Shown here one piece after another: positions 13,698-46,898 of a stretch of DNA of 47,225 bases. Source of the DNA: Oopsacas minuta (lineage: Eukaryota > Animalia > Porifera); NCBI GenBank assembly GCA_024704765.1, contig JAKMXF010000051.1, positions 1-47,225 of the forward strand, read 5' to 3'. Position 1 is the first letter of the stretch, and each line of letters opens with the position of its first letter. A program made the position numbers and the translations under genes. The notes under the pieces are model-generated. The model had not been told where the DNA came from and made no database searches. It saw only the letters and a list, made by a program, of their open reading frames with translations.

Positions 13698-15803
13698 ATG
13701 GAAGAAGGGAAACTAAACTGGAACTTAAAGGTGTCAGATCTGCATGAACTATCGGAACTATACATCCGTGAGAAAAGACTAGTTTTCGACAAAATTGCTT
13801 CTCTAAAAGACCCTAATTTCAATAATACATTAGGTGTGATTATAATCACATATGATTAATCCTATATTTTTATTGAATGATCCCTAGGTGCTCTGGAGAG
13901 GTTCGATAGGGATTGGACCTGTCTCGTTAACACCTTAACTCTCTACCAACATGTCGCCTCCTCTCCGGAGCTCCGAACTGCTAGTAGCGAGGCAGACAAG
14001 AATATTAGCAATTTCGATATTCAAATGTCTATGAGATTTGACGTTTTTAAAGTGGTTAATAGTTTGGTGGCACAAAGTGGCACACTTGTGGCAGAGGAGA
14101 AAAGGTGTTTGGAAAAGTTTCTCTTGAAAGGGAGGAAGAATGGCCTAGAGATGGAAGAGGTGAAGAGGAATGCAATCGAAAAGTTAAAACAAGAATTATC
14201 CGATTTGTGTATTGAATTCCAGAAAAATTTGAATGAAGAAAATACGAAATTATTCTTCAATCCTGATCAGCTGAATGGTTAGTTCCGTATTAATATTATT
14301 AGTCCCGTATTAATATATTCTATAGGAACTAGTCAATCATTCCAGGATTCCCTCAAGAAGTCAGAGGATGGATTATTGGAACTGACACTAAGTTACCCGC
14401 ACTTTTTCCCTACAATGGAGTCCTGCTGTGTTCCTGAAACTAGAATGAAATTACAGAAGTCTTTTAATTCCAGATGCAAAGATACAAATTCCTTAATTCT
14501 ATTAAAGGTAACTTCTTAACCAATCAAATTACAGGCTTAATAGTTTCATTAATAGGTACTCAAACTACGTCACGAATTGGCGGGCATTTTAGGCTACAAA
14601 ACATTTTCCGATTTCACTTTGGATGGCGTGACAATGGCTGCCACTTCTCAGAGGGTCAAAGAATTCTTGGAGAATTTGAAACTTAGACTTAAGAGTTTAG
14701 GAGAACAGGATTTGAATGCCTTATTGGAACTGAAACTAACTGAGACAGATGACAATAGTCCTATAACTATGTATGACTACAGATATTATATGAAGAGGCG
14801 CCAAAAGCTTCATTGTGGTATTGACCATGAGGCATACCGATCATACTTTCCAGTAACCAAGGTTACTGATGCTGTATGTGATATTTATCAAGAATTATTG
14901 GGTCTCAAATTTACGCCGGACACATCTGCCAAATTGTGGCACGAAGAGGTTAGGTGTCATGTGGTTCACGATGCTTCATGTGGCGAGCTGCTCGGACACT
15001 TTTTCCTGGACCTGTTCCCGCGTGAAGGGAAGTACGGTCATGCATGTTGTATCGGAATTCAGCCATCATGCCACTCCGACACATTTTCACAGCCTGCTGT
15101 AGCTGTCATGCTTGCTAACTTTACTCGTGGACAAGGTGACAAACCGGGCCTCCTGACCCATGACGAGGTGGAAACTTACTTCCACGAATTTGGACACGTC
15201 ATGCATCAACTGTGTACACGTACTCAGCTCAGCTGTTTCTCAGGGACTCGTGTGGAGAGGGATTTTGTAGAGACCCCCTCACAGATGCTGGAAAACTGGT
15301 GTTGGAGTAGAGAAGGCCTCAAGAGGCTTAGCTGCCACTTTGACACAAATGAACCACTTAGTGACCTGATGATAGACAATCTTGTAAAGTCAAGATTCCT
15401 AAACCACCCACTCAAAACTCTCCGCCAGGTGGCTCTATCCACTTTAGATTTTGTGCTACACACAGACTCTAATGTTGATCTCTCTGTCTACGACCAAATT
15501 ATGACAGACATTCTTGGCATTCCTCCGTTGCTAGGGACATGTATGCCTGCCACATTTGTGCATCTTACGGGTGGCTATGACTCCAAATACTACGGATATC
15601 TCTGGAGTCAGGTGTTTGCTGCTGATATGTTTGTTACACGATTTGAGAAGGAGGGTATCTTCTCACAGAGAGTTGGGATGGATTATAGAAGGTTCATATT
15701 GGAACCAGGCGGTACCCTGGATGCAGATGTGATGCTTAGGAATTTCCTGGGAAGAGAGCCGAATAGTGACGCATTCTTCAGAGCTCTGACACCAAGAGTG
15801 TGA
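13698..15803 (+). CDS. THOP1: Thimet oligopeptidase/neurolysin-like M3 metallopeptidase, 651 aa
   Basis: join(13698..13833,13888..14277,14326..14507,14556..15803) = 1956 nt in frame. HEFGH zinc motif, DLFPREGKYGHA, ERDFVETPSQMLENW, GGYDSKYYGYLWS. THOP1 vs NLN orthology is not resolved. Confidence 0.9.
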
Positions 15804-15934
15804 ATTATTCATATGCTTAACTTGTTAATTACTAGAATTGATCTTAGAATTATTTGCTCAAATCGGAACTAATTAGAATATATCAGAGGTGTTAAATGTA
15901 TAATATTATCTATACCTTTATGCCCTAGCAACCA

Positions 15935-18919
15935 ATGTCTGCTCAGGAATGCTGTGACATAACTCTTAGAATATTTTCATCAATTCAAGAACTCAGAAAT
16001 CAGAGAATTATACAAAATGCAAAATCTGAAATATTATCTCTACTCTCTAAATTCACACCTCTCGAGGTGTTAGATGCCATTCTGCCACCTCTGCGACACA
16101 TTTTGTGCCACAAATCTAACAATAGATATCTTCAGGCTTACTTTGAACTCGTAATCTCACTAATTATAGAATTTTCACACCTCTCATATAGTGTCACCGA
16201 ATTATGTCTCAAAGATTCCATTTTAGAAGAAATATTAAAATTATCAGATGTTAAGAATAAAGTGGTTCGTACAAGAACGTGTCAACTATTGTGTCACATT
16301 GTGGCACGAGATGGTGCAACACAAATCAAGCTAGGTGTCTGGGAAGACAGAATTTATGATTGTCTCTTGAGTCACACGCGGGATAAGATTTCGTCTGTCA
16401 GGATTGAAGCCATTAAAGGATTGGCCAATTTTATGAAACCATCTGACCATTTGTGTCCATGTGTTCTCAGAATAATGTGGCACATCAAACATGACGCCTC
16501 TAGTGACGTCAGGAAAAAGTGTCTCCAATTGCTACCCCTGACGAATGAAACTTTAGATATAATTGTGTCACAAGTGGCAGATAATAGTGTCGAGGTTAAA
16601 GTGACAACTTTGAAAATTCTAACAGAAAATATTCATTTGAAATTTCTTAGAATGTCAGAAGTTATGCAAATTCTAAAAATAGCAACCTTTGAGCAGAATA
16701 AAGGTGTGATAATTGGATTCCAGAATCTTTTCAAGAAGTGGCTCTCTCTGGAATGTGACATTATTTTCATTTTGCAGAGATTCGATTTGATTGGCGAGCC
16801 ACAAATCTGCTCACAAACACTTCAGAATTTCTTGAAAATCTCACCACTTGGCGCTCTTTCTAAATTGTGGCAGAATTTGACAGGTATCGAGACAGCAGAC
16901 CTGCCTCCTGATGGTCTCTTGTGTGGTGACATATTTGAGCCATCTGCCATTTCTGTAGAATTCTCGTTTTTGTGGCTAAATTTAGCAAACTTTGTCCATA
17001 ACAACAAGGAAGGATCTCCGGTATGTGAGGAATGTGTAATTCCTGATCCTGTCCAGTTCTCTGAATATTTAATTAAATTTCAGGAATTTTTTGTGACACA
17101 AAATGGCGCTTATTCTGAACAGCTGAGATTCATTTTCGAGAATATTTTACAACTTTTGGAATTCATTGATTATTCAAACGAAAGTGGCAGAGATCGCATA
17201 ATTGTGTCACTCAGATCTTTGGTTACTAACAATGAATTCCACCTGTCTCTAATTGAGCCATCTCTGCGCCACTTCATACTTATATGCCCTGATGTCGATA
17301 AGAGAATTATGAATTTATCAACCGCCATTATTGCCATGAATGTGTCATCTCAGCCACCAGATATTCAAGACCCTTACACTCAATTATCAACTCCTTTAAC
17401 ACAGACCGACACATCTCTGCCACTTGACACTCATACCGACACAATTATGCCACCTAACACCCAGGAGAGTGACACTTTAGACAAAAGTTTGAGATCTCTT
17501 CAAATAACTATTTTGCTTATGCAACAAGTCAAAGTAAGTTCTGTTTGTTTATTTGTTTGTTTATCTGTATAGGTTCAGCATTTGTTTGTTTATTTGTTTG
17601 TTTATCTGTATAGGTTCAGCATTTGTTTGTTTATTTGTTTATCTGTGTAGATTCAGCATTTGTTTGTTTATTTGTTTGTTTATCTTTGTAGGTTCAGCAA
17701 CCTGACTCACAACTCCTATCTTTAGTTAATTCTGTTTTACTTCCAAATCTTTTACAAGAAGATTTTGCTGTTAGAGAATTGGCGCTCAAAGGATTGGCTG
17801 TCACTTCTATGACGTCATTTGAAATGGCACATAATGTGGTCCCTAGCTTCATAATGGTAGCAACAGAAGCCCTCTTCTTAGACCACCTCAGTGTACAAAT
17901 AACAGCACTTAGTTCCATATTGGACCTGTTCCTGTTGTATGGAGATCCTGTTTTCAAGGTGTGATATATAATCATATGAATAATCACTCTTTTATCACTT
18001 TCATATTTCTTTATAGCTAATGAAAATGTTGATTCATAATTCTGAGCCTGAAGAGTCTAATCCGGAACCAGAACAGGAACTTGGACAGGAACAAACTGAC
18101 CATGAAGCACACATTCCAGCTGTTAAGCAACACATAATTTCAATACTATTAAGAGTTATCCAATCAGATTCTCCGGAATTACAGGAAATAGCTCTCATAG
18201 GTTTGTGTAAATTATTCTTAGCCAATAGGATTCGTTCCTGTAATTTATTGGGACAACTTCTGATAAGATCCTTCCATCCGGTTACCAACACCTCTCCGTC
18301 CCTCACCGAGGCTATATTTGCATTTTTCTATTCCTTCACTTTGAGGTGTCAAGAGAATTGTGTCCTCTTAGCGGACTCTCTTATCCCGACACTTTGGACA
18401 GTGTTTGAAGCTCCTGAGGACACATTTTTGAGTTTAGTTAGTTTGGACGCTGTCAGTGACAAAGTTCTATTTTTCTTAACTCATAAGAATTCACACGATT
18501 TATTAGTTGAACAGCTGTTAATTCTGTGTCTGAATAATTTGGAAAATGAGGTGATATGTAGATCAGCTGTTCGATGTCTCAGCCAATCAGATTTGAGTCA
18601 TTTTGGGCATCAAATTCAGGTGGTGAAGCACTGGGGAAATTTAACCAATGAAATTGCAAAGAATTCCACTAATAATATATTCATAGGAAAATTCCAAGCA
18701 AAACTCAAAGTGTTAAACCCAGATTATGACATTGTGTCACCGTGCCACTTTATGACACCTAAGTCCGCCACTAAATCCAGTGTAAAGAAAGGTTATGGTC
18801 GCTCTATCAAGAAAAAGGCAGAATCCATCCGTGAGTCACTAACACCTCGAGTGAAATCATCGCGACACAAAACACCTATAAATTATACTATTGAATTCAG
18901 TTCTGGAGAAGAATCTTAG
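15935..18919 (+). CDS. NCAPG: Condensin I subunit CAP-G (HEAT repeats), 922 aa
   Basis: join(15935..17533,17692..17958,18017..18919) = 2769 nt in frame. KNKVVRTRTCQLL, RDKISSVRIEA, HDASSDVRK, LLPNLLQEDFAVRELALKGL, ALIGLCKLFL; CDK-site-rich basic tail. Confidence 0.85.
17542..17699 (+). repeat. Four tandem copies (41/37/41-nt spacing) of the NCAPG intron-1 3' splice site
   Basis: Unit tttgtttgtttatttgtttgtttatctgtatag|gttcagca; AGs end at 17572, 17613, 17650 and 17691. Confidence 0.95.
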
Positions 18920-19259
18920 ATTTATTATTATAGCAACCTAGCAACCAGATTGGTTACAAATATATCAAATTAACTGAAACTATAAAGATATAATTCTTAT
19001 CTTCAGAACAGCTGATGAACCCATCCATCAGTTCTAATCTTTTATTTGATTTCTTTGTTCTTTTGTGTCGCACGACAATATGTGACAGCTGTGCCACTTA
19101 GCAATTATGTTATTTATCCTAATCAGTCCTCTGTTACCAGAACCATAGGATAGTTCCATTTTAAAGAGGACAAAATTCTAAAATTAGAACAAGTATCTGT
19201 AATTCATACACGAATCAACCAATGAAATAAGAGAGATATACCAAACTAAATACACTAAC

Positions 19260-19315
19260 GTTTAGCTGTTTAGCTGTTTAGCTGTTTAGCTGTTTAGCTG
19301 TTTAGCTGTTTAGCT
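19260..19315. repeat. Perfect octamer microsatellite (GTTTAGCT)x7
   Basis: Read directly; 24 nt downstream of the gelsolin-like stop codon. Confidence 0.97.
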
Positions 19316-19339
19316 AGACATTTGACAAACACACACAAA

Positions 19340-20440
19340 TTATTGGAATTTACTAGAAAAGCTCTGTGGCTCTTGTCCCTGCTTGACTACACTAATCGGA
19401 ACCAAGGGGTGATCAGTTCCGGATAGATAGTTGTGTGCATAAGACATTCCATTCTTCTTTTCATCCCCGGAGGCGCCAGATCCTATCCACACGAAACAAT
19501 CGGTCCCTATGTCCGCTATGAACACATCGTTAGGGTCCAATTTGTTCCAATGGAGGGTCCCGTCCTCCTCGCAGGAGAACTGCATTGAACCCCCGGCGTC
19601 ACTGAGACGGTACAACTTTTTTATGGGTACCATTTGAGAGCTCTTAGAGGCCTCCTCGGGAGTCAGTTGTTCGTCTGACATGAATCCAAAGAACTCATTG
19701 ACTTCTGATCCGTGATCTCCTTCATCTATGATCTCAAATGCTATGCGTCCTATTCTGTCAGATTTAATCTCCTGTATTACCTGTGCTCCTTTGTATTTCT
19801 CATTCTTATTAGAGGTCTTACCCTGCCATAAGTACCCTTTTGTACCAGCATCAAGAATGAACACGTCATCACTGTTTATTACTGCCTTTTTAAGCGCCAC
19901 TTCTTTCACGGTTGTCGAGCTTTTCGCGTTTTCAGACCGGATGTGTAGGAGTCTGGGTTTGTAGTGCTCAGGTTCCACATGTTTGAACCCTGTCTCTGCT
20001 CCTCCTTCTAGGATATTTATAGATTTGAAATATTTCTTGAATAATTCAGATTCATATCCCATAACCTCTCTGTGTTGTATGGGTTTATCATCATGATAGG
20101 TGTCAAGCTCTACTGTCTTATAAGCAGCTGTTCCGTACTCATCCTGTGTAGAGTCCTTTCCTATCCAAAAGTGTACGTCATATTTTAACAGTTCCTCCTC
20201 TTTGTATGTATTTAGGATTATATAGGAATCTCCGCCGTAGAATTTTCCGTATTCGTCCTTTGGCCATGTTTCCACTTTGAATTTTACTATCCGCCAAATT
20301 TCCAGGCCCACCTTACTTCCAGATCCGTGCCAGGCAGGCTCAGCCTCCGCGGACTCCTTCTTCACACCTTTCTCTGTGTCAGACCCAAACAGAGCTAAAT
20401 TAGAATCCTTCCAATCGTATTCCTTTGCCTTGACTGCCAT
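19340..20440 (-). CDS. Three-domain gelsolin/severin-like actin-severing protein, intronless, 366 aa
   Basis: GLEIWRIVKF, GKFYGGDSYIIL, DVHFWIGKDSTQDEYGTAAYKTVELD, QHREVMGYESELF, DDVFILD, DVFIADIG. Confidence 0.93.
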   Translation of the reverse strand: MAVKAKEYDWKDSNLALFGSDTEKGVKKESAEAEPAWHGSGSKVGLEIWRIVKFKVETWPKDEYGKFYGGDSYIILNTYKEEELLKYDVHFWIGKDSTQDEYGTAAYKTVELDTYHDDKPIQHREVMGYESELFKKYFKSINILEGGAETGFKHVEPEHYKPRLLHIRSENAKSSTTVKEVALKKAVINSDDVFILDAGTKGYLWQGKTSNKNEKYKGAQVIQEIKSDRIGRIAFEIIDEGDHGSEVNEFFGFMSDEQLTPEEASKSSQMVPIKKLYRLSDAGGSMQFSCEEDGTLHWNKLDPNDVFIADIGTDCFVWIGSGASGDEKKNGMSYAHNYLSGTDHPLVPISVVKQGQEPQSFSSKFQ

Positions 20441-21026
20441 ATTTTGCTACTGTGACACTTTATGCCACTTTTATAGCAAAATGTGTCGTACTTGGCTGAC
20501 TAAAATTGGTAATTTCTCTTTGAAGCCATCTATTGAAACCTTTTCAATCTTAGATAACATAATACGCTAGCCAATAGGATTCTCAGGAATTTGCATTCAC
20601 AAATCCAACACCTTCAATAGCTTATTTGGAACTAAATATTTTATAGTTCCAATTTACTATAATTAATTCTTAGTTCACTAGATAAATTAGTTTCTAGAAT
20701 TGCGCGTTATTTGGCGCTTAATTCGATAATTGGCGCCTTACTCTTTTATTGCCTAAAATGGAAATAATAGAATCATTATTGAATTTTGGATTATTGTTTC
20801 TATTTAGTAATTAAGTTAAGGAAACCTTTCTAAAATGTGTCACAAATGGTTTCAGATAAATCACATTTCTTATAAACCCATATATCACTTCTAAACAGAT
20901 TTATTGACTCTACTCATGTGTCACACTTTAGCTCTAATTATTCATATTATTTAGGCGCCTGAATTTGGCGGAAACTTTAGTTATAATTCCTATTATTATT
21001 CTATAAATAGCAACTCTTATAACTCT

Positions 21027-21902
21027 ATGGATTGGTCAGCAGAACAGCTGATTCATTATCTCAAGAATCCGTATAACATAGCTTATGATATTCAGGGATT
21101 TTACGTCTCAAATCTGCCCAACTCAGACCCCAGGGTGTCAAACTGGCTCCTCATGCATTCCATAATGCCTACCATCTATGCAGTTGGTGCCTACCTCAGC
21201 TTGGTGTCAATAACTACGATTGTATCTCGACACCTTCCTAAGATGGAACTATTGTCTGCTATGCGTCTGTATAACATTTCTATTATTCTCATATGTGCTT
21301 ATACTATGTACGAACTTATCGTAAGCTCTATCCTGATTGGTCAGAACTTCTGGTGCTCTCCCGCCATTTACTCAACTGACGAATCAGCTGTTCGATATGC
21401 TAGAGCTATTTGGCTGTATTATGTGTCCAAATTTCTGGAATTCACAGATACTACATTCTTTGTATTACGCGGGAAATTCAATCAGGTTACATTCCTACAT
21501 GTGTACCATCATGCCAGTATGCCACTTATCTGGTGGGTAGGTGTGAAGTGGCACGCGGGTGGCATAACACACGTTGGACCCATTTGTAACAGTTTTATCC
21601 ACGTGGTAATGTACTCGTACTATTTCCTGGCTTCTTTTGGCGCCCGATTTCAGAGGTATCTATGGTGGAAGAAATATTTGACAGTCATGCAGCTGGCTCA
21701 GTTTCATATTGTACTTATTCACACCTTTTTGGCGCTCGTTTCTGAGGATTGCGGTTACTCAAAAGGTGTTTTAACAAGTCAAACAATTTATATGATTTCT
21801 CTGATTGGTTTATTTCTTAATTTCTATTTTCAAAGCTATTCTGCTAAGAAATCTAATCAGCCAATCAGAAACGGAGTTCGTAAAGAAATTCTCATTGAAT
21901 AG
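21027..21902 (+). CDS. Very-long-chain fatty acid elongase, ELOVL4/ELOVL7-like, intronless, 291 aa
   Basis: DPRVSNWLLM, SKFLEFTDTTFFVLRGK, FLHVYHH (HxxHH), NSFIHVVMYSYY, WWKKYLTVMQLAQF. Confidence 0.92.
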   Translation: MDWSAEQLIHYLKNPYNIAYDIQGFYVSNLPNSDPRVSNWLLMHSIMPTIYAVGAYLSLVSITTIVSRHLPKMELLSAMRLYNISIILICAYTMYELIVSSILIGQNFWCSPAIYSTDESAVRYARAIWLYYVSKFLEFTDTTFFVLRGKFNQVTFLHVYHHASMPLIWWVGVKWHAGGITHVGPICNSFIHVVMYSYYFLASFGARFQRYLWWKKYLTVMQLAQFHIVLIHTFLALVSEDCGYSKGVLTSQTIYMISLIGLFLNFYFQSYSAKKSNQPIRNGVRKEILIE

Positions 21903-22036
21903 AATCCTTAGTTACCAGATTTACAGATAGGAATTCTTATTTATTTATAACCTTTCACACTTTTTAATATATTCATATTTTCACACCTTTCTCTACTTAT
22001 AAGTATTAATTGACCAATTATTTTGCTAGTTAGCAT

Positions 22037-25000
22037 ATGTATAACAATATTGGACTTCCTACTCCCAGGGGGTCTGGCACTAATGGACACATTCAGAGGA
22101 ACTTCGCAGCTGTTCGGCCAGTGACGTCATCTCGTGGAGAGCATGATACCAAAGAGAGAGGACTCTATGGTAAGAAGACAAGTCATGACATTCAGGAACA
22201 TAACAGGAAGAGATTAGTTCACGTCAAATGTCTGGAGCTTAAAGATCAGCTGGAGAGAGAAGGGTGTGTTACTATTAATAGAATATTCACAGCTGATTGT
22301 TTAATAATTCAAATATTTAGATTGAGTGTTAATGAGATAGAAATACGTGTTAAACAGCTGAGCAGTGAGCTAATAAAAGATATCACAGGGTTAGAGAGGT
22401 ATATACACTTATATTAAATATTCATATGATTATTCACAAGGTGTTAGTTCTGGTAATTTTAGTGTAGCTTTAAACTTCATTTTGATATTTCTAGAATCTT
22501 TCCTGGTAAGTCAGATTTAAAGAATTTGTGTAAGTGGAAGCTCCACTTTTGTAGCTATTTTTGTTTATTTGTTAATTGTGTCGCCTACCTTTAAAATTTG
22601 TCTGTTTATAGGAAATGGGTCGATGATGACAACGCAGTGGCACGCGAGAAACAGCGTAAGTGGCGTGAAGCGCTAAACCCATCAGAAACCCAATCTGGTA
22701 GTCAGGAATCAAATAGGAGAAAACAAGCGTAAGTTTTTTGCCAATCAAATCTGCTAATTGGTAAGTTAATTCTTGAGCTAGCTAATTATTGTCTTTAGAG
22801 AGGTGTCAAGTGGCAGAAGTGGCGCAAGGACACACACATATTCTCAGCACCACAGGTATATCTTACTAATTAACCAATCATATTCTTGCTTTATCAGTTA
22901 TTTACAGAGAATCTTCAGAGGATAATTCTGAACAATTAGAACAGAGTGATAACGATAGTAGCTCTACACATTCCAGAGGCAAACTATCGTCTCCAGGGAA
23001 AGATTGTTCACATTCCAGTGCTCGTGTATCATCTCCAAGGAGGGAGCATCTGCATTCCAGAGCTAAAGTACCTTCTATAAGAGAGCAGTCACATTCCAGA
23101 GTACAGATTCCGTCTCCAAGGAGAGAGCATGCGCATTCCAGAGTACAGATGCCGTCTCCAAGGAGAGTAGCCTTCACACCTCACTCTGAACCTCCAGAAA
23201 TAGGCGGGGAAGTAGAGAGCCATTCAGAAAGCGAGGAGGAGACTCGTGACAAGAGGAAAAGGAAACATAGGTTTATACTCATATGACTAATTTAACACCT
23301 TTATATTCATATTTTCACACCTTTCTTAGGAACAAAAATTCTGGAAAGAAACACTCACATTCCTTGTAAGTATTATTATTCTATTTTTAGTAATTATTAT
23401 TCTATTTTTAGTAATTATTACTATTCTAAATAATTTGATTACTTAGGGAGGATTATGCCACTAAAGGACACAACAGACGACACAATAGTGGCACAGGTGA
23501 TGTGAAATCTAAGAAGCAGCTGAGAGAGAGGTGTGAAAATGTGTCCTCAGAGGTCCGACATAAAACAGACAAGAAAAAATCTAGAAAAGAGAAAGAGCGT
23601 AAATGTACGCTTGGAAATTATGGCACATTAGAAATGTATTTGTTTGTTTGTTTGTTTGTTTATAGTTTCCAAACAGAGGCGACACAGGAACAGCTCCCCC
23701 TCAGAGGATTCTTCTAGCAATGACGCAATCCTCTCACCCCCTCCGAGGAAGCTCAAGAAGAAATTTAACAAGAAGCGACAAAGAGACAGGAGTGTCAGTG
23801 AAGTGGCAGAGGACACAATACGACACAAACGACACAAAAAGAAGAAAATTGTGTCTAGCAGAAAGAAGCGACACATTTCAACTTCAGAAACCACCTCAGC
23901 TAGTGACACCTCGGATTCCGAGGACACATCTGAGCTCTCAATCAGTCAATCAGAGACAGAGTCTAGCGAGGTAACTCCCCCGCCTAAACCCGCCACTAAA
24001 AGCCACAAAAGAAAGAAATCAAAGAAAAATCGAAAAATTGAAACTTCTCTTGAAAGTTCCGATTACGAATCTCCCAAGAAAAAGGTAAAGCGACACAAAC
24101 GTGACACAATTTACAAACGGCGACACAAACATAGGAAAAATAAGAAAAAGCTGTCAGCTGTTAGGAAGCACAAAAAACGGCGCGCAAAGAGGAGAGAATC
24201 TAGTAGCCAATCAGATTCCGATTCTGAGGCCTCGGTTCAGGAATTCGTGGAAGTTAGACATTCCAGAAAGAAGCGTCGTAACCAAGATACGGAAAGTGAG
24301 ATTGAGAATGTGAAGAATGTGGACTCTGATTACGAAATAGAATCTAATGCAGATTTCATTCCTGACTCTCCTGGTCAAGTTAGTTCCAGTTATTCACAGT
24401 TTTATTTACATAATTTATTATATATCAATTTTAGGTGTTAGTTGAAACTGAAACTGAAATTAGTTCCGATTCACAATTCGAGGTTAGAAGGACACATCGT
24501 GACACAAAACACAAGAAACACGTCAAGTTATCCAAGCGACACAATTCTAAAAGCAAGAAGAAAAGAGGTGTCAAGTGGCACAAAATGGAGAGGAAGCGAT
24601 CAGTCAGTTCCAGTGAAGCGACTAGTTCCGATGAGATTGAGCACCAGAAGGAAACTGCTACTCAGAAAGGTGTGAAAAGACGTAGAAGAGATCCAAAAGA
24701 TAGTGACGTAGAATGTTAGTAATAACTCTACGATCTGATTGGTTAGAAATGTAACTTATTCTATTTATAGTAACGCATAAAACAGCTGATAATGTGTCAA
24801 AGAAGAAACAACGAATAGAAAGACATTCCTCTAGTTCTTCTGAGCAACCCAGCATTCCAGACATTCCTGCTGTTGCTATGGAAGAGGCTGTACAATCTTC
24901 TGAAGAAACGTTCCATCAGGTCCCTGTGGTTGCTAAGAGACGGCCAGGTAAGAAAGGAATGCTTACAGGTCTCTTTGGAGAGCAAGGATATGAGGACAAG

Positions 25001-28416: not shown

Positions 28417-28532
28417 CCAATAAAATGCTAGATTTGACACTAATTCAATTACTAATGAGTTAAGCTACAAATATATTTCAAATCTCAAATCTGATTGGTT
28501 AAATTCCCTTAATTACATTTCTATATAACTCA

Positions 28533-31870: not shown

Positions 31871-32089
31871 TAAACCACTTAAGCCACAATCTGTATATAA
31901 GAATTTGTCTGTATATCTAAGCCTAGCGATCCCCTGGATACGAATTTGTAGCATTGGCATTTTACTGACGTATTTTATAGATCATATTTTAATATTAATC
32001 AACCCAGCTCTAATTTGTTTATTTGTTTGTTTGTTTACAAATATTTCAATTATACACTCAGACATATGATTGGGTAATTAGGTGTTTAT

Positions 32090-33628: not shown

Positions 33629-33850
33629 TCAACAATTGTAGATATTTTTTAGCCGTGTTAAAATATTATTAATCTCTAATTTCCAGCTCATAGAATTGTC
33701 ACTCTTAATTACATAGAAGTTACATTCCTTTCTGTTCTATCGTAACTATGTGGCTGCAGTGCCACTTTTGAGGATTTGTGACACAATTGTGTCCTGCGCC
33801 TATTTGTGCCTTTTTTCAGTATTTATTGATTTATTATTTTTAGAATTTAT

Positions 33851-34930: not shown

Positions 34931-35164
34931 ATATTCTAATCTGATTGGTCAATAATTGTATACTATTTTTATCGCGAATGTTTATACTTAGTTACAAACA
35001 CTGATTGTTGATTGGTCAGTTTATTCTATAAATAGTCAAAAATATATTTTAATGATTATCTTAAATTATCAGTAAGAAATAGACAACCAATAGAATTGCA
35101 GTGTTGCATGAGAATTATAAAACAGTGTTTTGGTTATATAGCAGTCTAAAAATAGAACTGGCGC

Positions 35165-37526: not shown

Positions 37527-37647
37527 TCTATTATATATCAAAAATAGTATAGGAAAACCTATAAATTCCTTGTTATATAGTAACTAGTGATCTTATTGCT
37601 CACTACACTAGTCATGAGCTATACACATGGCTCAGTGAATATTTGTG

Positions 37648-37660
37648 GTTGCTTGGCAAC
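37648..37660. promoter_or_regulatory. RFX X-box-like palindrome GTTGCTTGGCAAC
   Basis: Matches the RFX consensus GTNRC-N-RGYAAC; about 120 nt upstream of the stonin ATG. Confidence 0.45.
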
Positions 37661-38371
37661 CGAAATCTAGGCAAGAATGTTAATAATTGTTAGTGTCATA
37701 TTATATATGAATTTAAATGCAGAGTTCTTATGAAACGTGTATACATATTAACCAATCAAATGATTGGTTTCTTCTAAATATAGTCTTCTTAAAATCATAT
37801 TATTAAACACATTCCTGTCTATGATTCCGTAACTAGGATTATGACTACGTGTAGAATTGTGTATTATAGTGGCAGGGTGGTATATATATTGTGTCGAGGG
37901 ACACTTTGTGGATAAAAGGAACATACATTAAGATCCGTATACACAATTATAGCACAAATGTGTCGAATAATTAATCTAATTAGTGATTTATTAACCAATA
38001 AGATTAAAGCATAATTCTTATCTAACGATTCATTGGTTAATATATTTTAGCTTAAAACAGACACAAAATGGGCCATGTGGTACATGGCGACACAATCCAC
38101 TTAGCCAGGTGGCAGGTTATTAATTTGTCCACTTTTAAGTTGTATGATTCGATAATTTAATTATGACGTCATAACATTATTTCCTTATAGCTTCGATCTT
38201 GTGACACAATTGTGCCACTTGTATAATTTCCTATTGTGTCGCTTTTAGAAGATAACTTATAATTTGTGTTCTGAAGCCTTGGAGATTATTGGTCAAATGA
38301 TTTGTAATGATTAGTATATGAACTCTACAAATTGTGTCGAAAAGAGGACACAATTGAGAAGTGGCAGAGTG

Positions 38372-38372
<1 letters not shown>

Positions 38373-38407
<35 letters not shown>
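38373..38407. repeat. (CA)17 microsatellite
   Basis: Read directly; lies about 80 nt downstream of the ELOVL6 stop codon. Confidence 0.97.
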
Positions 38408-38409
<2 letters not shown>

Positions 38410-38489
38410 TATAAATCAATAAATAATAATCCATCTAATAGTTCGAAATAGAAAAGTACAAAATCGCTAGTTCTAAAAATAGAATAATT

Positions 38490-39434
38490 CTACTTTGAAT
38501 TGGAACCATTCTTTAGTTCCAGTTTCGGTTTCGGTTTCAGATAAGTTTGATAGAAGAAATTGGCGAATAAAGCGCCATACGACACATAAATCAGGATTGA
38601 GATTTGTATCTTGAAGGAATCCGTGCCACATGTAACACCTTTGAGGAATGCTCGTATTGTGATTGTGTTAAATATGACACCTAAAACCATTTGGAAGAGC
38701 TGGAGGATTGTGACACATTTGTTCACAATTTTGGGAATTGGAATGTGTCCGTTAGCCCGCACAGCGTAGTAGGAGTACATAACAAAATGGACTATGTAAT
38801 TCATGAACCCAAACCAGAGACCTAAGAGGAGGTGTTAGATATATACATAAGGTGTTAGATATATACATATGATAAACTCACCACTAGAAGTAGGGTGTGC
38901 ATATGAGTACCAGCAGTACACAAACACAGTAATGTGATGGTACCAGTGTAGGAAGGAGAGCGGGGTCTTCCTGAGGACAATAAACGAGGTGTCAATTAAT
39001 TCCGGTAGCTTGGACAGGGGGAACAGGAACGCATACAATTTCTTACCCCTGACTCCCTTGTAGTAGGTAACGTCACAGAGGGCAGCTGTCCACCCGACCT
39101 TAAGGGGCTGCTCAAATATGTAGTCACTAATCCTCAAGAATGCTATGAGGGAGAAGAGGGAGAGGGAGAGAGACCAGAGGAACAGCGGTTTCCTGAGATC
39201 AAAGGGTCGTTTGTCTGTCATATATTTTCCTATCAGGAATATACACACGACGTAGATGAGTGACACATATATTGATACATGCCAATTCTGTCGCATCCAC
39301 TGGTTTACTTTTACGTCATCAAATGCCAACTCAATTGTGTCCAGACTTGTCAATAATGGCAGTTTATCCTGCCACTTGGGTAAATTCACATATGACAATA
39401 AATTCATGAATTTGAATCCAATTGAGTCTCCCAT
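38490..39434 (-). CDS. ELOVL6: Fatty acid elongase ELOVL6/ELOVL3 type, 294 aa
   Basis: Exons 39434-38882 and 38821-38490 = 885 nt, intron 60 nt. FDLRKPLFLWSLSL, SKLPELIDTSFIVLRK, FLHWYHH, MNYIVHFVMYSYYAVRA. Confidence 0.88.
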
Positions 39435-39443
39435 TTTTCTATC

Positions 39444-39576
39444 GTTTAACCGTTTAGATAGATAGATAGATGTTTAACCGTTTAGATAGCTAGATAGATG
39501 TTTAACCGTTTAGATAGCTAGATAGATGTTTAACCGTTTAGATAGCTAGATAGATGTTTAAACGTTTAGCTAGATA
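39444..39576. repeat. 28-bp minisatellite, 4 full copies plus a degenerate partial
   Basis: gtttaaccgtttagatag(a/c)tagatagat at 39444, 39472, 39500 and 39528; begins 10 nt upstream of the ELOVL6 ATG. Confidence 0.95.
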
Positions 39577-39611
39577 TAATTTAGATAATTGAATTGACTA
39601 ATAATACTATT

Positions 39612-40252
39612 TTACGACTGAATATGTGGCAGTACCAGTGCCACTAACTCCTTATAACCTGACACCTCGGGAAGTGGCACAGTGCCATCATTCTGTATAG
39701 TTATGTCACATTCCAGATTATCTAAGCCACATTCTGATTGGGCATTATCGACTCCGTCCACAAATTTGAATCCTCTTTCCTCCCTGACAGATTGTGTCGC
39801 TGCCACTTTTACAGTGACACAATTATACTTTTGTCGGAAGTATGACACATCTGAGTGGCGCCTGACATCAGAAATTATCCAGATAGTATACAAGTGTCCC
39901 TCCTCTGTAGCCAGTCTAATTAGGTGTTAAAAAAGTGTCACAATTCTACATAAAATGGCACAAACCTGCAGAAATATCCAGGATCTTTGTTCCTAACCTC
40001 CTCCCCCCATTCTATCATATTCTTACGATGTATCTCTTTGTACTCAGTAGCACTCATCAGCTGATCAAGATCCAAGGTGTGAATTGTGGCATAACTCTTT
40101 TTCAGAGGGGCGGATAATCGAAAAATGGCACAGGTCTTCCCTAAATTGGCACACAGTGTCTCCGACACAAAATCTTTGCCACATTTTCTCTTTCCGCTTA
40201 CAAGAATAACAACAAGTGGCAGATATGTCGCTGTGCCACTTAACTGTGCCAT
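39612..40252 (-). CDS. PMVK: Phosphomevalonate kinase (animal type), 196 aa
   Basis: Exons 40252-39966 and 39915-39612 = 591 nt, intron 50 nt. SGKRKCGKDF P-loop, RLSAPLK, YKEIHRKNMIEWGEEVRNKDPGYFCR, ISDVRR, GVDNAQSECGLD. Confidence 0.93.
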
Positions 40253-40315
40253 TTATCAGCTAATAAACACAAACAATAACAAATATATTATAGTTCCATA
40301 TACGAATAAATATCT

Positions 40316-43276
40316 TTAATTATTTGATTTATCTCTCTGCCACTTTTCTATCCTTTCCTTTAGTTCAGGTATTGGTTCCAGTTCTTCTATGCTTAATGGC
40401 TGTCTGGAAAAAGGATCGTTCTTTTGGTTCAATATGTGTCGCTCTATGGTGGCACGATCCACCACATTGCCAGATGGCAGGAGGATCGGATCAGACATTA
40501 AAGTGTTCATTAAAGCATCCAAGAATTCCTCAGGAATATTTTCTATTGAAATATTGTTGCATTCCAAAGTACGTTTTGTGTTGCTAAACTTACCACATAT
40601 CTCCTGCCACTTCTCCATCTTGTCAAAAGGTGCTTTAGCGACACCTAACACCTTCTGGGTGTTAATGAGAAGAGATTCCGAGTAACTCCGTCCGTCGCTA
40701 ACGACAGCAATCAGGAATGTGTCAAATTGAGCCATATTAAAATACACCTCTAGAATGTGGCACAGAAGGTCAAGTGGCTTAAAACTCAGCTGTTCCCGAT
40801 CTAACACATTTAGAGTTCTATTTTTAGGTCCAGTCAGCTGATTTAGGAAATAGTTCAACATCGTTGCTAAGGAATCTATCTGTACAGGAATTGTAAGTAT
40901 CTGAGGTGTCTCATGACTGATCCTCACTAAGGTGTGAATTGTCCTCTCTGCTAAGCGATTCATGGTACGAGCTAATCGGGTCTCTTGTCCCAATTCTGTA
41001 ATTTTAGAATTCTTTTCCTCTTCCGACAACTCATGCCACTTTGTCCCACTTTTAAGTTTCTCGATGACTGCCACATTTTGAACATGTGACAACCCTTCAT
41101 CCAATAGGAATGTGGCATCGTTAATTAGCGCGTTTAGGAATTTGAGGAGTACAGGTGGCGTAGAATATGTCCTATCTAACACCTCGCGACACAATGTGTC
41201 CAAACATGGCTTAAATGGCGCACTAGACCACAATAACTCAATCAAGTCATACATGGAGTGTCGATATGTGAATTTTTGTTCAAATTCTAAATCGTCACCT
41301 GTCACTTCTATCTCTGCAAACACCTTCAAAAGACCGGGCAAAAAGTGTCGCAGTGCCATGCGATCAGATTGGAGGGTTTCACGTATCCTGTCTGTATGTG
41401 ACACCAAAAAGTGTCGTGTGTCATTGTCAGAATGTGTCAGAGTACCTAACACCTCTGCTATCTTCCCTCTCTTATGAGGATTCAGTATTAAATCTGAGTT
41501 ATTAAGGAATACTGTAGAAAATTGGATAAACTTTGAATAATCTGGCTGAAGTGTCACTAATGTGTCCTTGCAGGTGGCAGAGAGGAACTGGAGAATCTCC
41601 AACACGTTGCTAAGGTAGAACTCAGGAATGCAGGCTATCTGAGGCGTCACTTTATGTTTAGTTCCGGTTAGAAACAAGAACCAATCGCATGAAAATAAAC
41701 AGAATTGTGTCAACATTTGGACAAGATTTTCACTCAAAAGGTGTGATTTTAGTGACAAATATGAGCCAATCAAATCCTCGTATGTGGCCTTCAAAAGTGG
41801 CTGATTTTCCAGAGTTGGCAGGATGTCTTTGATCTCTGCCAGTTGTCGCGATTTGTTAATAAAGGTGTCAATGACTGGCACATAATAAACACTCAAAGCA
41901 AAATGTGTCACATGAAATAATTGTGTCGGAAATGAGAAATCAGGAGACAAGTCTAAAATTAGATCTTCTGTGTCCTCGCAGTGACACAATTTGGATTCCT
42001 TACACAACTCAAGAATGTGAGGAACAGGAACTGAACTAGGATTAGTTCCAATTCTAGAAACAGCTGACTCAAAACTGGAATTATTCTCAATCAAACAATA
42101 AAATGAATTAATTTTACTCACAAGTTTTCCCTCACAAAGTTTTTGACAAAATTTTAATAACAAAGTTGTTACGTTTAAGCCCATTCCGTCAGTGGCATAA
42201 AGTGTTTGCTGAAAGGTGTTAGTTCTTAATTGTAGGCCCAGTGAGCCACGTGGGTGGTTCCGTTTTAAAAAGAGAGACAACCATAGGAATATGGAATGGG
42301 AATTATGTTTGAAAAGTGGTTTAAATGTTTGGTGTGCCACTTCACATAAAGTTGTTAATCTCTGGTTAAGCATGCCACACATTCCTTCAATAGAACTGGT
42401 TGTCAAGGTACTGGCATCCTTGAAATGGGAGGGATAGGTGTTGATAGGTGACACTCTGAAAAGTGGCCCTAAAATGGTTTTAAACTCAAAGTCAAGTGGC
42501 GTAGTTAAGCCTCTAAAATCAAGTAACATAGATGTGAACAGCTGAGCTATCCTAGCCACTGAAAAGAGGACAGAATATGGCACAAAGTGGCACGTGGGTA
42601 TCACATCCGGCGAGGTGTTAGAAATGAATGGCTCAGAAAACTTGAGAAGAATAGGTGTGAAAATTCGACACATTTCTTCATGAGATAATTGGCCAATAAG
42701 ATTAGTTAGAAATTCTAACGTCTGGGGAAGTGTGGCTCGCTCAGACACAAAATTCATGCGACACATTTTCATCACCTCTTCCCCTAGATCACTATTGGAA
42801 CCAGAAGTAACTGACCTAGCAACCGCAGAATGTACCAAAGGAATGCAATGGGTTCTAACGTCATAACTTTCAAGATAGGATAATCTCACAAAACAGCTGA
42901 AAAGATAATTAAGTGATGTCTGCTTTGTGCCACTTGACGCCTGTAAATACTCATTCAGTGCCACTTCTATATTAAACAACGAGAGCAGCGGGTGCCACAC
43001 GTAGACACCTTGATCCGATTGTGTCGCGGTATATGGCAGATATGTCACTTCCTTAGCAACCGTTTTGGGAGACAAATATTTGATATTTTTAAGGAATTTT
43101 CTGATATCTGGATGACACAAAGTGAAACCAAATGTGTCTTCAAGTGTCGCATTTAAACGAAGTGGCACGGTTGGAAAGTGAGTAGTTAACACCTTGAAAT
43201 TAGGCGGGTAATGTCTCTGAATCTCTAATTGTACTTTCGGGCAAAATCTCTTGAACGGATTCTCATCAGTTGCCAT
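40316..43276 (-). CDS. UBE4A: Ubiquitin conjugation factor E4 A (Ufd2 core plus U-box), intronless, 986 aa
   Basis: NPHKRGKIAEVL, KVFAEIEVTGD..FEQKFTYR, LINDATFLLDEGL, U-box PEEFLDALMNTLMSDPILLPSG...DPFSRQPL. Confidence 0.9.
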   Translation of the reverse strand: MATDENPFKRFCPKVQLEIQRHYPPNFKVLTTHFPTVPLRLNATLEDTFGFTLCHPDIRKFLKNIKYLSPKTVAKEVTYLPYTATQSDQGVYVWHPLLSLFNIEVALNEYLQASSGTKQTSLNYLFSCFVRLSYLESYDVRTHCIPLVHSAVARSVTSGSNSDLGEEVMKMCRMNFVSERATLPQTLEFLTNLIGQLSHEEMCRIFTPILLKFSEPFISNTSPDVIPTCHFVPYSVLFSVARIAQLFTSMLLDFRGLTTPLDFEFKTILGPLFRVSPINTYPSHFKDASTLTTSSIEGMCGMLNQRLTTLCEVAHQTFKPLFKHNSHSIFLWLSLFLKRNHPRGSLGLQLRTNTFQQTLYATDGMGLNVTTLLLKFCQKLCEGKLVSKINSFYCLIENNSSFESAVSRIGTNPSSVPVPHILELCKESKLCHCEDTEDLILDLSPDFSFPTQLFHVTHFALSVYYVPVIDTFINKSRQLAEIKDILPTLENQPLLKATYEDLIGSYLSLKSHLLSENLVQMLTQFCLFSCDWFLFLTGTKHKVTPQIACIPEFYLSNVLEILQFLSATCKDTLVTLQPDYSKFIQFSTVFLNNSDLILNPHKRGKIAEVLGTLTHSDNDTRHFLVSHTDRIRETLQSDRMALRHFLPGLLKVFAEIEVTGDDLEFEQKFTYRHSMYDLIELLWSSAPFKPCLDTLCREVLDRTYSTPPVLLKFLNALINDATFLLDEGLSHVQNVAVIEKLKSGTKWHELSEEEKNSKITELGQETRLARTMNRLAERTIHTLVRISHETPQILTIPVQIDSLATMLNYFLNQLTGPKNRTLNVLDREQLSFKPLDLLCHILEVYFNMAQFDTFLIAVVSDGRSYSESLLINTQKVLGVAKAPFDKMEKWQEICGKFSNTKRTLECNNISIENIPEEFLDALMNTLMSDPILLPSGNVVDRATIERHILNQKNDPFSRQPLSIEELEPIPELKERIEKWQRDKSNN

Positions 43277-43393
43277 GGTTACAGCTAAGTTATGCAGGAT
43301 TATAAGTTAAAAATTAAAATAAAACACGAAAAGAATTGCAGCTAAAAATCAACAAATAAAAACTACAAATATTAGTATAAAAATAGAAATTAT

Positions 43394-45449
43394 TCAGCAA
43401 AGAGTTTCGACACTATTGAACCTGTTCAGAGGTGACAAGTGGTCGTGAGGAGTCGATGTGGTAGGAACAGAATCTACAAGGTGTGTGCTATAAAGAGATG
43501 AAAATTAATTAGAAGAAATAACTCACATTTTCTCTGTGTTGGTCCTGTTGATATCTCAGCTCTTATCAAGCTGTTATTCGTCAAGTGATCGGGTATCTAA
43601 ACAGAGTAGAGATTAATCATATTTTCACACCTCTACAGAGGGCATTACGGATCTTCCAGAACGTGCAGTCACAGTCAACTCCCGTAAGTAATATCGAAGC
43701 TGAAGGGACCACGATAATTATAACAGGAGTTTGATTAATATATCCATGGTTCATGTAATACCTTATCAGGGTTAGTAAAGGTGGGAGTAGATCCAACATC
43801 CCTAACATTCTTCTGCTCCATAGCAACGGATTTCCTCAATCCTGCATAAGGAATGCCATCAGGAAATCCTGTTCTATTTTTAGTATCACTTATACTACGA
43901 GGTTTGATTGGCTCAGGAGTTCTACTGAATAGAAATATTTAAATATTAGATAACACATTTGGTTGCTATGGTAACATACCTTGTTATAGGTGGTAAAGTG
44001 TCAGAGCAAGTCCGTGCCATTTCTTCAATATTGCTATAAATAGAATTGGAATGTGGCAGAGGTGGTTTTGTGGCACATTTCTGAAATGGCAAGTTTTCAT
44101 ACACATCATCTTGTCGAAGTGGCAGGGTGGTTGGTTTAATGTGTCGTTTGTTTGGCTTAGAAGTGGTATGATCTTGCGATACATTGGATTGGTTAGAGGG
44201 TTGTCTGTCAAATTGAGGCCTAATTGTGTCGCGCGACACATTTGACGCCCTTTTAATAGGGGAGCTAGTGAGAGGAACGCTTAGCTCTTTGAAAAGAGTT
44301 ATTTGTGGACTGTTAGAATGTGTCGCATGTGGCTGATACGACACACTAGTGCGGGATAGAGGTGACAACTCTCTTGGGGTAGAGGTCAAGTGGGAGGGTG
44401 CGCCAGAAGGTGTCAAGTGCTCAATTACTCCAATTTTACTCTTCCTCTTATCAACTTTACGACTTGATTGTCTGTTCTTTCTCTTAGGGCGATGACGGAA
44501 TAATCCCACAATCCCGCCTGAAAGTAAACAAATAAACAAACAAATAAACAAACAAACAAACAAACAAGCAGGCAAATAACTCACTTATAATTTTTCCAAA
44601 CACCTTGTCTTTCCGCTGTTCCATACCATCAGCCCTATTTGGTTGCCATTCTAGAGATTCATCTGATTGGTTAATTGAGGAATGTCCAGCAGATGCTAGT
44701 GAGTGTCTCTTAACGCGCGCAGTGGGCGGGATAACCCAGCTGGTAATATCAGGATTAAGATTCATACTCTGTGATAATAGCTTTATGCATTTCTTTTGTG
44801 TATTCTTGTCGTTATGGTAGATACAGTCCTGAGAGGCAGAGAGGGAGACCATGTCTGGGTCTACTGGGGTAGTGGATATGAATAAACGGGTAGATACAGG
44901 CGTTACTAGGGAGCGATGTGAGGTATGTGGCTTGTCTTCATCCGGGGTTATGAATTTCACAGGTTGGAATGTGTCATTCTCTGGAGTTATAAAGGCGTTA
45001 TTGCGTGGTCTATGTGGGGCACCATGAATATAATCTAGAGAATCCTGAGAAGTGTCATCTGCCATATTGTGTCGCGTAAGTGGCACGAAAGATGGCGCAA
45101 TTTCAGTATTCTGGAATGGGAGATTACAATAGACGGGAAATTGTGTCGGGGAGTGTAGCACCTCATAGTGACCGCTTTGACGTGGCACGGTCTCGTTAAG
45201 GGGTGTAGGCGCGGGCTGGTACGGGACATATCCGTAGCTAGACTCTGAAATCCGATTGGAGTCTCGGTTGCTAGGGTGCACCTGATGGAATGTGGAAGGA
45301 AGTGATTTTCTTTTATCAGAATTCTCTTCGATAAAATCGTGACTGAGTTTGTGAGAACTTCTGTATTTGAGTGACGGAAATGCATCTATTGCATTCTTTT
45401 GTCTCTCCATGGTAACCAGGTTGCGAGGTAATTGAGGAGAGTCTGACAT
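43394..45449 (-). CDS. Disordered Ser/Pro/Thr-rich protein with multiple tyrosine motifs (candidate docking/adaptor protein), about 588 aa
   Basis: Exons 45449-44585, 44517-43980, 43924-43762, 43699-43649, 43596-43527, 43473-43394 = 1767 nt in frame, introns 67/55/62/52/53 nt. Exons 1-2 are solid; the last four are chosen for frame and typical intron size. No folded domain recognised. Confidence 0.6.
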
Positions 45450-45555
45450 TCTAATTTTAGAATTTATAAATATTAGTTTACCAAAGGTGTGAAAAGTAAA
45501 TCACAAACAAACAAATATTTTAATTGCTAAAAGTGCGATTAGTTGCTTAACAAGA

Positions 45556-46898
45556 TCAAGTGGTCCTCCGTCCTCTAGGCAGAGGGGGAGCAAGGAACCC
45601 TGTGGTACTGGAGCCAGCTCGAGTGTAGGAGACAGTTTTAACGCCAGAACGTGTCAAATCAGAGGACACATTCTTGGTTGATTTACCGCGCCAATTCTTA
45701 ACGAATTTCTGTTTGGAATTTTTTCCATTTTTGAAATATTTTGATTTTGCTTTTCTAGAATATTCCACAGAATTTCTTATAGAATGTGACTGAGTGGTGT
45801 GTGTCACTAATGTGTCGGCCTGAGCTGCCAGAAACTGTCGCTTCAACTCACAGAACTTTGCTGTCACTTCCAAGAATGCCTCACCCTTGAACTTGTTCCA
45901 CTTAGACTCGGTTACCCCTGTAACAGCTAGGAATGTGGCACGTGTCTCAGGGGTGTTATAACTCATCTCTCTGAGGGTTGCCATATTGAAAATATTCTCA
46001 GGCGATAAGTCACAGTCCTCTGCCACCTGGTGGCGCAGAGTTCTCAGCTGATCCAGACACTCTGCGAAGTTTGGATACCCAGCTGTCTGTCCATTTGCAA
46101 TTTCATCATTCGTAGCATTCTTTTGCTTGCTTTTGGTTGCTATGATGGGTGAGCAACGGAAAAGTATTTTCTTAGTTTCTTTCAAAACCTAAAATTATAC
46201 TTTAAAATTGCTACTCATTCATAGTTCCAGTTGTTGTCACCTTTTCAGCTTCAGGACCTATTTTAACATAATTGAATACCCTGTCATGCAATCCTATATT
46301 CACTTGCTCCACTAACACCTCAGAGATGATCAGGAGGTGTAGAAACCTGTCAATATCTGTCCTACTTAATCCCCCAGATCTCCCGTACATAGGGAGGGTG
46401 TTGTAATTGGATTGGTACATCTTCTGACCCTGACACCCTCTAGAGAACAGCTGTGTTATATTTATTTTACAAACAAGATTAGCTCCTGAAATATAGGTGT
46501 ACACATATGGCGCCGTTAAGGTGCCACTTGTATTCATATATACATTTCGGTTCCATATTCAGTAGATAATTGAATTAGTGATCTCACAAACACAAACCAG
46601 ATTACAAATTCGTAGTTATTAACAGTTACCTGAATATGTCTGCCATCTGTATAAGTGTCAAATTAGAATGTGGCAAGAGTCTAACACTCAGGATTATATT
46701 TTGCGTCTCAGCTGTCATATCCTTCTCCATAATATCACCAGCTGATTTCTCACGACAATTGTCACAAGTCTTGCCGCATTCCTCAGCAGAGAACTCCTCA
46801 CCAAGGTAATTGAGTATTAATACTCTCCTACAGTCTGTCAAGTTCTCACAGAATGCCACCATCATGTGGAGGTTGTCAAAGTGGACACGGGCGACACT
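45556..46898 (-). CDS. BLM: RecQ helicase, Bloom-like: last three exons (Zn-binding RQC, winged helix, HRDC); 5' part outside the window or unresolved
   Basis: Exons 46898-46630, 46439-46241, 46188-45556 in frame. HFDNLHMMVAFCENLTDCRRVLILNYLGE...CDNC (RQC zinc site), and HRDC CLDQLRTLRHQVA...IFNMATLREMS...VTGVTESK. Confidence 0.8.

Follow-up and report, generated by a model that had tools for sequence, protein, structure and literature searches.

Genes of the scaffold and sequence examined

The sequence analysed here, referred to as the window, is the entire scaffold C51 of Oopsacas minuta (contig JAKMXF010000051.1, 47,225 nucleotides; GC content 39%, CpG observed/expected 0.58), in which the hexamers GTGGCA/TGCCAC, GACACA/TGTGTC and ACACCT/AGGTGT, termed words below, saturate some genes and are scarce in others. 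The assembly comprises 61,460,524 bases in 365 pieces, and Table 1 of PMC10282587 gives 61.46 Mb and 365 scaffolds for the species. Sequence examination covered 250 kb of this genome and approximately 150 kb of its relatives, and the genome-wide view was obtained from whole-genome word counts and from the first 100 places per word search. Open reading frames (ORFs) were used as a stand-in for exons, and every protein query was a single ORF.

Most of the gene names proposed in a preliminary description of the window were confirmed by Pfam scans of the ORFs, which recognised UBE4A, an NCAPG-like pair, a peptidase M3, an ABC1 kinase, gelsolin, a guanidino kinase, an AGPAT-type protein, two inositol polyphosphate kinases (IPKs) and an HRDC domain. 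The features of the window are the following.

2443..4679, + strand, two IPK ORFs, word-poor
5220..8129, + strand, 969-aa ORF without Pfam match, 14 GTGGCA (13 antisense)
8789..9919, + strand, AGPAT-type acyltransferase, word-poor
10349..11443, + strand, creatine/guanidino kinase, word-poor
13881..47225, no strand assigned, word-rich stretch, 341 copies of GTGGCA, GACACA or ACACCT on either strand over 33 kb (approximately 10 per kb)
14577..15803, + strand, THOP1-like peptidase M3 ORF (Pfam), 8 words/kb
15935..18919, + strand, NCAPG-like condensin subunit, ORFs 15935-17572 and 18020-18919 (HEAT, Cnd3), 12-14 words/kb
19340..20440, - strand, gelsolin, word-poor (counts 0, 1, 2), with rich genes on both sides
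23644..24441, + strand, 265-aa ORF without Pfam match, 10 GACACA (9 sense)
26149..27402, - strand, NHL-repeat ORF, intermediate (0 GTGGCA, 5 GACACA)
32090..33628, + strand, ADCK5, ABC1 kinase-like (Pfam and database name), 13 GTGGCA, 5 GACACA, 4 ACACCT
33740..34900, + strand, putative small-intron gene of leucine-rich-repeat type (direct sequence reading)
39615..40252, - strand, PMVK exons, named through syntenic P-mevalo_kinase ORFs in relatives
40316..43276, - strand, UBE4A, single 986-aa ORF with Ufd2P core and U-box (Pfam), word-rich
44484..46185, - strand, unnamed 321-aa ORF and HRDC-domain (RecQ/BLM-like) ORF, 7-8 words/kb, moderately rich

The word-rich stretch is interrupted by word-poor genes, and its densest spot, which is also the densest of the window, is formed by the PMVK exons (19-26 words/kb). 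In the putative gene at 33740..34900, direct reading places words in the upstream flank, the exons and the introns, with at most 3 per 50 bp.

Excess of the words against shuffled controls

The window contains 124 copies of GTGGCA/TGCCAC, where 100 dinucleotide-preserving shuffles gave 14.7 +/- 3.9 (maximum 27), and 137 copies of GACACA/TGTGTC, for which such shuffles gave 27.0 +/- 5.1 (maximum 38). For UBE4A, where about 16 and about 18 copies of these two words had been counted, the recount gave exactly 16 GTGGCA and 18 GACACA; the third word, ACACCT/AGGTGT, is present in 16 copies, and the words use each of the three frames and either orientation. Shuffling of synonymous codons (protein and codon usage kept) gave 5.5 GTGGCA, 4.6 GACACA and 2.9 ACACCT (z of 5.0, 6.9 and 7.9), and codon permutation an expectation of 1.4, 2.3 and 2.1, respectively. 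Since both controls are exceeded, the excess sits in synonymous choice as well as in amino-acid order. The possibility raised at the outset, that codon usage together with dinucleotide bias would suffice, fails under the shuffles; composition and codon usage were thus ruled out as the cause, and the hexamer excess is confirmed as real.

The hexamers are cores of words of 8-11 bp, chiefly AAGTGGCA(G/C), (G)CGACACAAT(T) and (T)TAACACCT(C/T), flanking preferences lengthening each of them to approximately 10 bp. Against a third-order Markov model, AAGTGGCA was observed 54 times for 3.7 expected, GACACAAT 45 times for 5.4, GCGACACA 27 times for 1.7, TAACACCT 43 times for 4.8, and CGACAC, a word that retains a CpG, 71 times for 11. 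The looser family GYGNCR suggested earlier accommodates two of the words, GTGGCA and GTGTCG/GTGTCA. Over 95 bins of 2.5 kb on two scaffolds, the most uneven 7-mers were the AAGTGGCA and GACACAA families, which cluster together.

Further enriched words accompany the main ones: AGGTGTGAAA, CACATTCC, GTTGCTAG, CCAATCAG, AACAGCTGAT and CTAAAAATAG, which we take to resemble T-box, TEAD, RFX, NF-Y, E-box and MEF2 sites, respectively. AGGTGTGAAA has 13 occurrences; the commonest form of the ACACCT type is TAACACCT, which differs by one base from TCACACCT, the consensus of the T-box half-site. T-box domains are encoded at about four loci of the O. minuta genome, and at least one TEAD gene is also present. 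The motifs of NK-2, YY1, CTCF-like, THAP and Sox factors were considered for AAGTGGCA and GACACAAT and rejected on account of misfitting flanking preferences.

Word-rich and word-poor genes

Genes do fall into a rich and a poor class, and codon usage together with dinucleotide bias fails to account for the counts. NCAPG, ADCK5, THOP1, PMVK and the HRDC/BLM-like ORF are rich, as had been stated, and so are two unnamed ORFs. The genes previously put down as poor are at shuffle expectation, with 0.9 words/kb for AGPAT, 1.8 for creatine kinase, 2.7 for gelsolin and approximately 3-4 for the IPKs. In bins of 250 bp, almost no words remain over gelsolin, AGPAT and creatine kinase, and density recovers within a few hundred bases. 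As a separate observation, the word-poor genes encode the most conserved proteins (gelsolin 86-88% identity to its orthologues, vs 60-75% for UBE4A) and have a higher GC content at third codon positions (0.47-0.51 vs 0.35-0.45).

Strand, frame and spacing of the words

The words had been described as a property of coding exons, and this specificity was not borne out: in the 14-47 kb region, each hexamer has a density of 3.4-3.9 per kb inside ORFs of at least 100 aa and of 2.7-3.3 per kb outside them, and words in non-ORF DNA are about as conserved (see below). In ORFs, AAGTGGCA occurs 38 times in sense and 34 times in antisense orientation, GTGGCA and TAACACCT likewise have no strand bias, and words occupy every frame that stop codons permit. 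The words are therefore a locus-wide feature at the level of double-stranded DNA, and not a feature of exons.

It was considered in this respect whether the words could work at the level of RNA, directing the export, stability, localisation or splicing of mostly intron-less transcripts. Many genes here are single-exon, and GACACA does have a sense excess in ORFs (146 vs 68); however, most of this excess is due to copies that encode Asp-Thr in frame 0 (72 of the 146), a restriction to the transcribed strand fails for the other words, and density and conservation are equal outside ORFs. An RNA-level action is accordingly regarded as very improbable.

Distances between words cluster at 9-40 bp. 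No fixed spacing was found within the window, which rules out a composite or palindromic site architecture there, and no long-range, nucleosome-scale or 10-bp periodicity of the words was found. Nor are the words embedded in longer repeated units: flank conservation ends approximately 10 bp out, and the ORFs that contain the sites are unique and conserved. The exceptions are two arrays. About 8 of the 14 GTGGCA of the 969-aa ORF fall in one coding tandem array of a 30-bp unit (6034-6431; 13.4 copies, 75% matches) that contains the main word as CTGCCACTTC, and 3 of the 10 GACACA of the 265-aa ORF lie within a 9-bp repeat (23812-23838).

Other repeats were noted in the window. At its beginning (positions 1-1000) lies a tandem satellite of approximately 313 bp in at least 3 copies, each copy of which has three copies of the 19-base word AATCCTTCACTGCTATCCA. 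The commonest 10-12-mers are (AAAC)n-like runs such as TAAACAAACAAA (33895-33940 and elsewhere), which are located in short introns and spacers and overlap forkhead-like TAAACA words.

Effect on protein sequence

A bias of the encoded proteins toward DT, CH, VA, AT and CV dipeptides had been suspected. It was found for the first four, with observed/expected ratios in rich ORFs of 2.1 (DT), 1.9 (VA), 3.1 (AT) and 4.5 (CH), and CV is not enriched. In poor ORFs, DT, VA and AT are at approximately 1.1, and CH was seen 0 times for 1.0 expected. GACACA encodes 21 of the 30 DT dipeptides. Six ADCK5 proteins of glass-sponge type contain on average 6.2 VA and 5.3 AT per protein, vs 2.8 and 1.1 in 114 other animals, and AV and TA, the same dipeptides in reverse order, show no such rise in this comparison. 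For gelsolin, no VA or AT difference was found between the glass-sponge group and other animals.

CpG content and the methylation hypothesis

The two gene classes had been likened to gene-body-methylated and unmethylated genes; the words would then be either a product of methylation or a signal for its readers. The genome is CpG-depleted (0.58), a cytosine-5 DNA methylase domain (PF00145) is present at two loci (on C354 and C266), and every word contains TG or CA, all of which are points in its favour. Word density, however, does not fall with CpG observed/expected: the correlation over 51 ORFs has the wrong sign (rho +0.23), and the ranges of rich ORFs (0.5-0.85) and poor ORFs (0.5-0.9) overlap. 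The most CpG-poor stretch sampled, on scaffold C66 (850-915 kb; 0.26-0.5), is without GTGGCA or nearly so, CGACAC is in excess with its CpG intact, and deamination cannot account for the conservation of whole words described below. A relation to methylation is thus considered improbable.

Occurrence in the genome

The counts of extended words in the whole genome, of their controls, and in C51 were as follows.

GAAGTGGCAG: genome 139, control 23, C51 11
AAGTGGCA: genome 2,941, control 870, C51 54 (24 times the mean density)
CGACACAA: genome 1,941, control 1,809, C51 31 (21 times the mean density)
AATTGTGTCG: genome 440, control 192, C51 13
CTAACACCTC: genome 282, control 130, C51 11

The excess above control is equivalent to approximately 1-2 Mb at the density of C51, i.e. 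a few percent of the genome. By these word counts the rich class is too small to represent housekeeping genes in general.

On scaffold C66, of which 200 kb were examined, 760-805 kb is at background and holds EGF/LRR (leucine-rich repeat) receptor genes with 0-1 words, and 810-845 kb is rich in the words of C51, a TRAFD1-type zinc-finger ORF and a WD40 ORF having 7-11 of each hexamer; GGAACT is co-enriched at 830-845 kb. The CpG-poor 65 kb at 850-915 kb mentioned above (amidase, P450 and many short ORFs) carry another set, CAGCTG, CATTCC, GTTGCTA and ACACCT. Different loci thus seem to carry different word vocabularies. Further along the same scaffold, 924050-927882 is a run of 3,833 N, possibly a gap.

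Perfect inverted pairs of the form TGCCACTT-N7/8-AAGTGGCA were counted 133 times in the genome, vs 0 for the reversed control. They have two recurrent forms, with a T5-G/C-A5 centre or a GTGTCAC centre, and are found on many scaffolds (e.g. C4:54157-54180, C9:100325-100347 and C3:123417-123439); among the pairs listed, none lies in an identifiable word-rich stretch. They may constitute the complete site of a dimeric protein, with the main word as half-site, or the core of a repeat family.

Conservation in related assemblies

UBE4A orthologues with 60-75% identity were recovered by protein search on long contigs of five ENA assemblies (ERZ25071281, ERZ25069837, ERZ25072740, ERZ25072730 and ERZ20067936), which probably represent other glass sponges. 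The next-best ADCK5 matches, including Ephydatia, Corticium and Sycon, have at most 47% identity. Two blocks of gene order are kept. One, common to all six assemblies, comprises the kinases, NHL, RecQ/BLM, UBE4A, PMVK, ELO, an AP subunit and ADCK5 (window 26000-47225); the other comprises AGPAT, creatine kinase, RPC5, THOP1, NCAPG and gelsolin (window 8700-27500). UBE4A is a single intron-less ORF in 6 of 6 assemblies and single-copy in the O. minuta genome.

These data also bear on trivial causes, i.e. codon usage, dinucleotide bias, dispersed repeats, contamination or assembly error. The 30-bp tandem array and the 9-bp repeat do inflate the counts of two ORFs. However, composition and codon usage are rejected by the shuffles, the words lie in unique conserved genes, a contaminant scaffold is ruled out by the single-copy UBE4A and by a gene order matching five relatives, and the same pattern recurs in five independent assemblies. 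An artefact is already refuted for the bulk of the sites, and its residual probability is slight.

Each UBE4A orthologue has 38-53 of the six hexamer forms, at GC contents ranging from 40 to 55%. Words were identical at the aligned place for 61% of sites in the relative of 75% identity (vs 21% for other hexamers) and for 41% in that of 60% identity (vs 12%); where the amino acids are identical, 73-84% of words are kept in the same two relatives, vs 31-37% of other hexamers. Four or more of the six species share the same word at 26.5% of UBE4A sites, vs 3.5% for controls. In the non-ORF DNA of a closer pair, 79% of words are kept, vs 43% for the control. In summary, conservation of word sites exceeds that of control hexamers three- to five-fold.

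All hexamers, taken strand-symmetrically, were then ranked by excess conservation over eight pairwise locus alignments. GTGGCA came first (z = 15.0), GACACA second (12.9) and ACACCT third (11.9), values that overstate independence, the alignments sharing species. Next came CATTCC, RFX-like GTTGCT, CCAATC and CAGCTG, which match TEAD, RFX, NF-Y and E-box sites, respectively.

Whether a gene is rich or poor is likewise maintained in the five related assemblies; the following densities were obtained in one relative and in O. minuta.

Gelsolin: relative 2.7/kb, O. minuta 2.7/kb
Creatine kinase: relative 1.8/kb, O. minuta 1.8/kb
AGPAT: relative 0/kb, O. minuta 0.9/kb
NCAPG: relative 20.3/kb, O. minuta 14/kb
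THOP1: relative 9.4/kb, O. minuta 8/kb
WD40 gene: relative 19.3/kb

Gelsolin is word-poor in two relatives, the intermediate pattern of the NHL-repeat ORF is repeated in one, and the ADCK5 orthologues of the relatives are word-rich. In Corticium candelabrum and Sycon ciliatum, which belong to two other sponge classes, word counts at the ADCK5 loci gave no excess; as far as this locus is concerned, sponges in general do not share the trait.

Approximately half of the word sites are lineage-specific, and such words often arise through amino-acid changes, for instance EV, DN, QP or GK to DT. This turnover raises the main rival explanation, that a locus-specific bias of mutation, repair or gene conversion makes and restores the words without benefit to the animal. 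Very-short-patch repair of Escherichia coli provides a model, in that a word-binding protein would steer mismatch repair toward the word-bearing strand. A near-constant number of words per gene despite the replacement of half the sites, and the origin of words by amino-acid changes without obvious benefit to the protein, would both be expected from such a bias, which at the population level is indistinguishable from selection with the present data. On the other side, a ten-fold difference separates neighbouring genes that lie within a few hundred bases of each other and is kept between species, at least 3 unrelated words share this behaviour and occur together, words of textbook transcription-factor type follow directly in the conservation scan, and no eukaryotic repair system of this kind is known to us. 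We regard such a bias as unlikely, and place the RNA, methylation and artefact explanations below it because of the points raised against each.

Interpretation

The explanation preferred here, to which a probability of roughly one half is given, is that the words are selected binding sites for putative DNA-binding proteins and mark whole loci. The specificity of the words, their independence of strand and frame, their clustering and their equal behaviour in coding and non-coding DNA have the look of selected protein-binding sites, as do their top rank in site conservation, the turnover at constant density and the like behaviour of textbook-like factor sites. That the words are so dense, cover loci from end to end and follow an all-or-none rule from gene to gene suggests a locus-wide mark rather than ordinary enhancers.

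The words, which recur roughly every 60-100 bp in flanks, introns and coding sequence alike, in a limited set of genes that evolution has kept fixed, would be read on double-stranded DNA by sequence-specific proteins. Selection would retain individual sites, turnover would hold the number per gene nearly constant, and the cost would be borne by synonymous codon choice and by the amino-acid sequence. The likely role would be that of a regulatory or chromatin mark of one gene class, for which the intergenic spacers of this genome may be too short. Binding by protein, and whatever effect it may have, are proposed from sequence patterns.

Several points weigh against this explanation. To our knowledge, no published motif matches the two main words, and their binder is putative; approximately 50 sites in a 3-kb gene of housekeeping type far exceeds ordinary enhancer architecture; a selection-like transmission bias would leave an identical pattern of conservation; the ranking by excess conservation draws on shared species, as noted above; and the 133 inverted pairs may instead be copies of a repeat family.

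A more far-reaching version, put forward tentatively, is that a limited, unchanging set of glass-sponge genes (approximately 2% of the genome if equally dense) is tagged as a class by its sequence, through DNA words peculiar to these animals that saturate the loci and are read by dedicated proteins. Such a mark might serve licensing, dosage or nuclear compartment control in a tissue of many nuclei, and parts of conserved proteins would have been rewritten class-wide for its sake.

If proteins do read the words, they would form an unusually clean natural second code across protein-coding sequence, gene-specific, conserved over an animal class and strong enough to alter amino acids. They would offer a direct route to how animals with very compact genomes keep regulatory or chromatin information when little intergenic DNA is left, and might bear on the stable gene order of glass sponges (PMC10282587). 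Ignoring a constraint at the DNA level would lead to misreading of dipeptide statistics, codon statistics and selection tests on the rich genes.

Comparison with known systems

Literature searches with the words returned only primers and unrelated matches and nothing describing these words, and two published glass-sponge genome papers (one of them PMC10282587) make no mention of the words or of motif enrichment.

Among known systems, a close likeness is to exonic transcription-factor sites ("duons") and to homotypic or heterotypic site clusters, which share short orientation-free words, overlap with codons, synonymous constraint and conservation; the companions found here moreover resemble T-box, TEAD, RFX, NF-Y, MEF2 and E-box sites. 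Unlike those sites, the words described here recur about once per 60-100 bp across entire loci, the same few words being used throughout rather than discrete modules, with an all-or-none state per gene that is kept across an animal class and with amino acids visibly reshaped.

The plant motif of intron-mediated enhancement, TTNGATYTG, acts from transcribed and even coding sequence, and is similar in being a short word present in many copies inside the transcription unit and writable into codons (bioRxiv 10.1101/269852). It acts only within approximately 1 kb of the transcription start, whereas several words cover the full gene length and its flanks here, and an effect of these on expression is hypothetical.

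The periodic An/Tn clusters (PATCs) of Caenorhabditis elegans are likewise a whole-locus sequence feature marking a specific and conserved class of genes, germline-expressed in the worm. They consist of A/T runs with a 10-bp period mostly in introns, whereas the words here are aperiodic, contain G and C, and occupy exons equally.

The MSL recognition elements of Drosophila and the rex/MEX motifs of C. elegans are comparable in that a delimited portion of the genome is enriched in a recognition word, possibly in two tiers, strong sites being few (here the 133 palindromes) and weak ones many. Their enrichment is approximately two-fold and chromosome-wide, whereas it is 20-fold and gene by gene here, and the listed palindromes lie outside identifiable rich stretches.

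Bacterial Chi sites, DNA uptake sequences and FtsK-orienting polar sequences (KOPS) have in common with the present words their occurrence in all frames and on both strands, their presence in conserved genes and their effect on dipeptides. Those sequences are genome-wide and serve prokaryotic recombination, uptake and segregation, whereas the present system is that of an animal, with several words in a few percent of genes.

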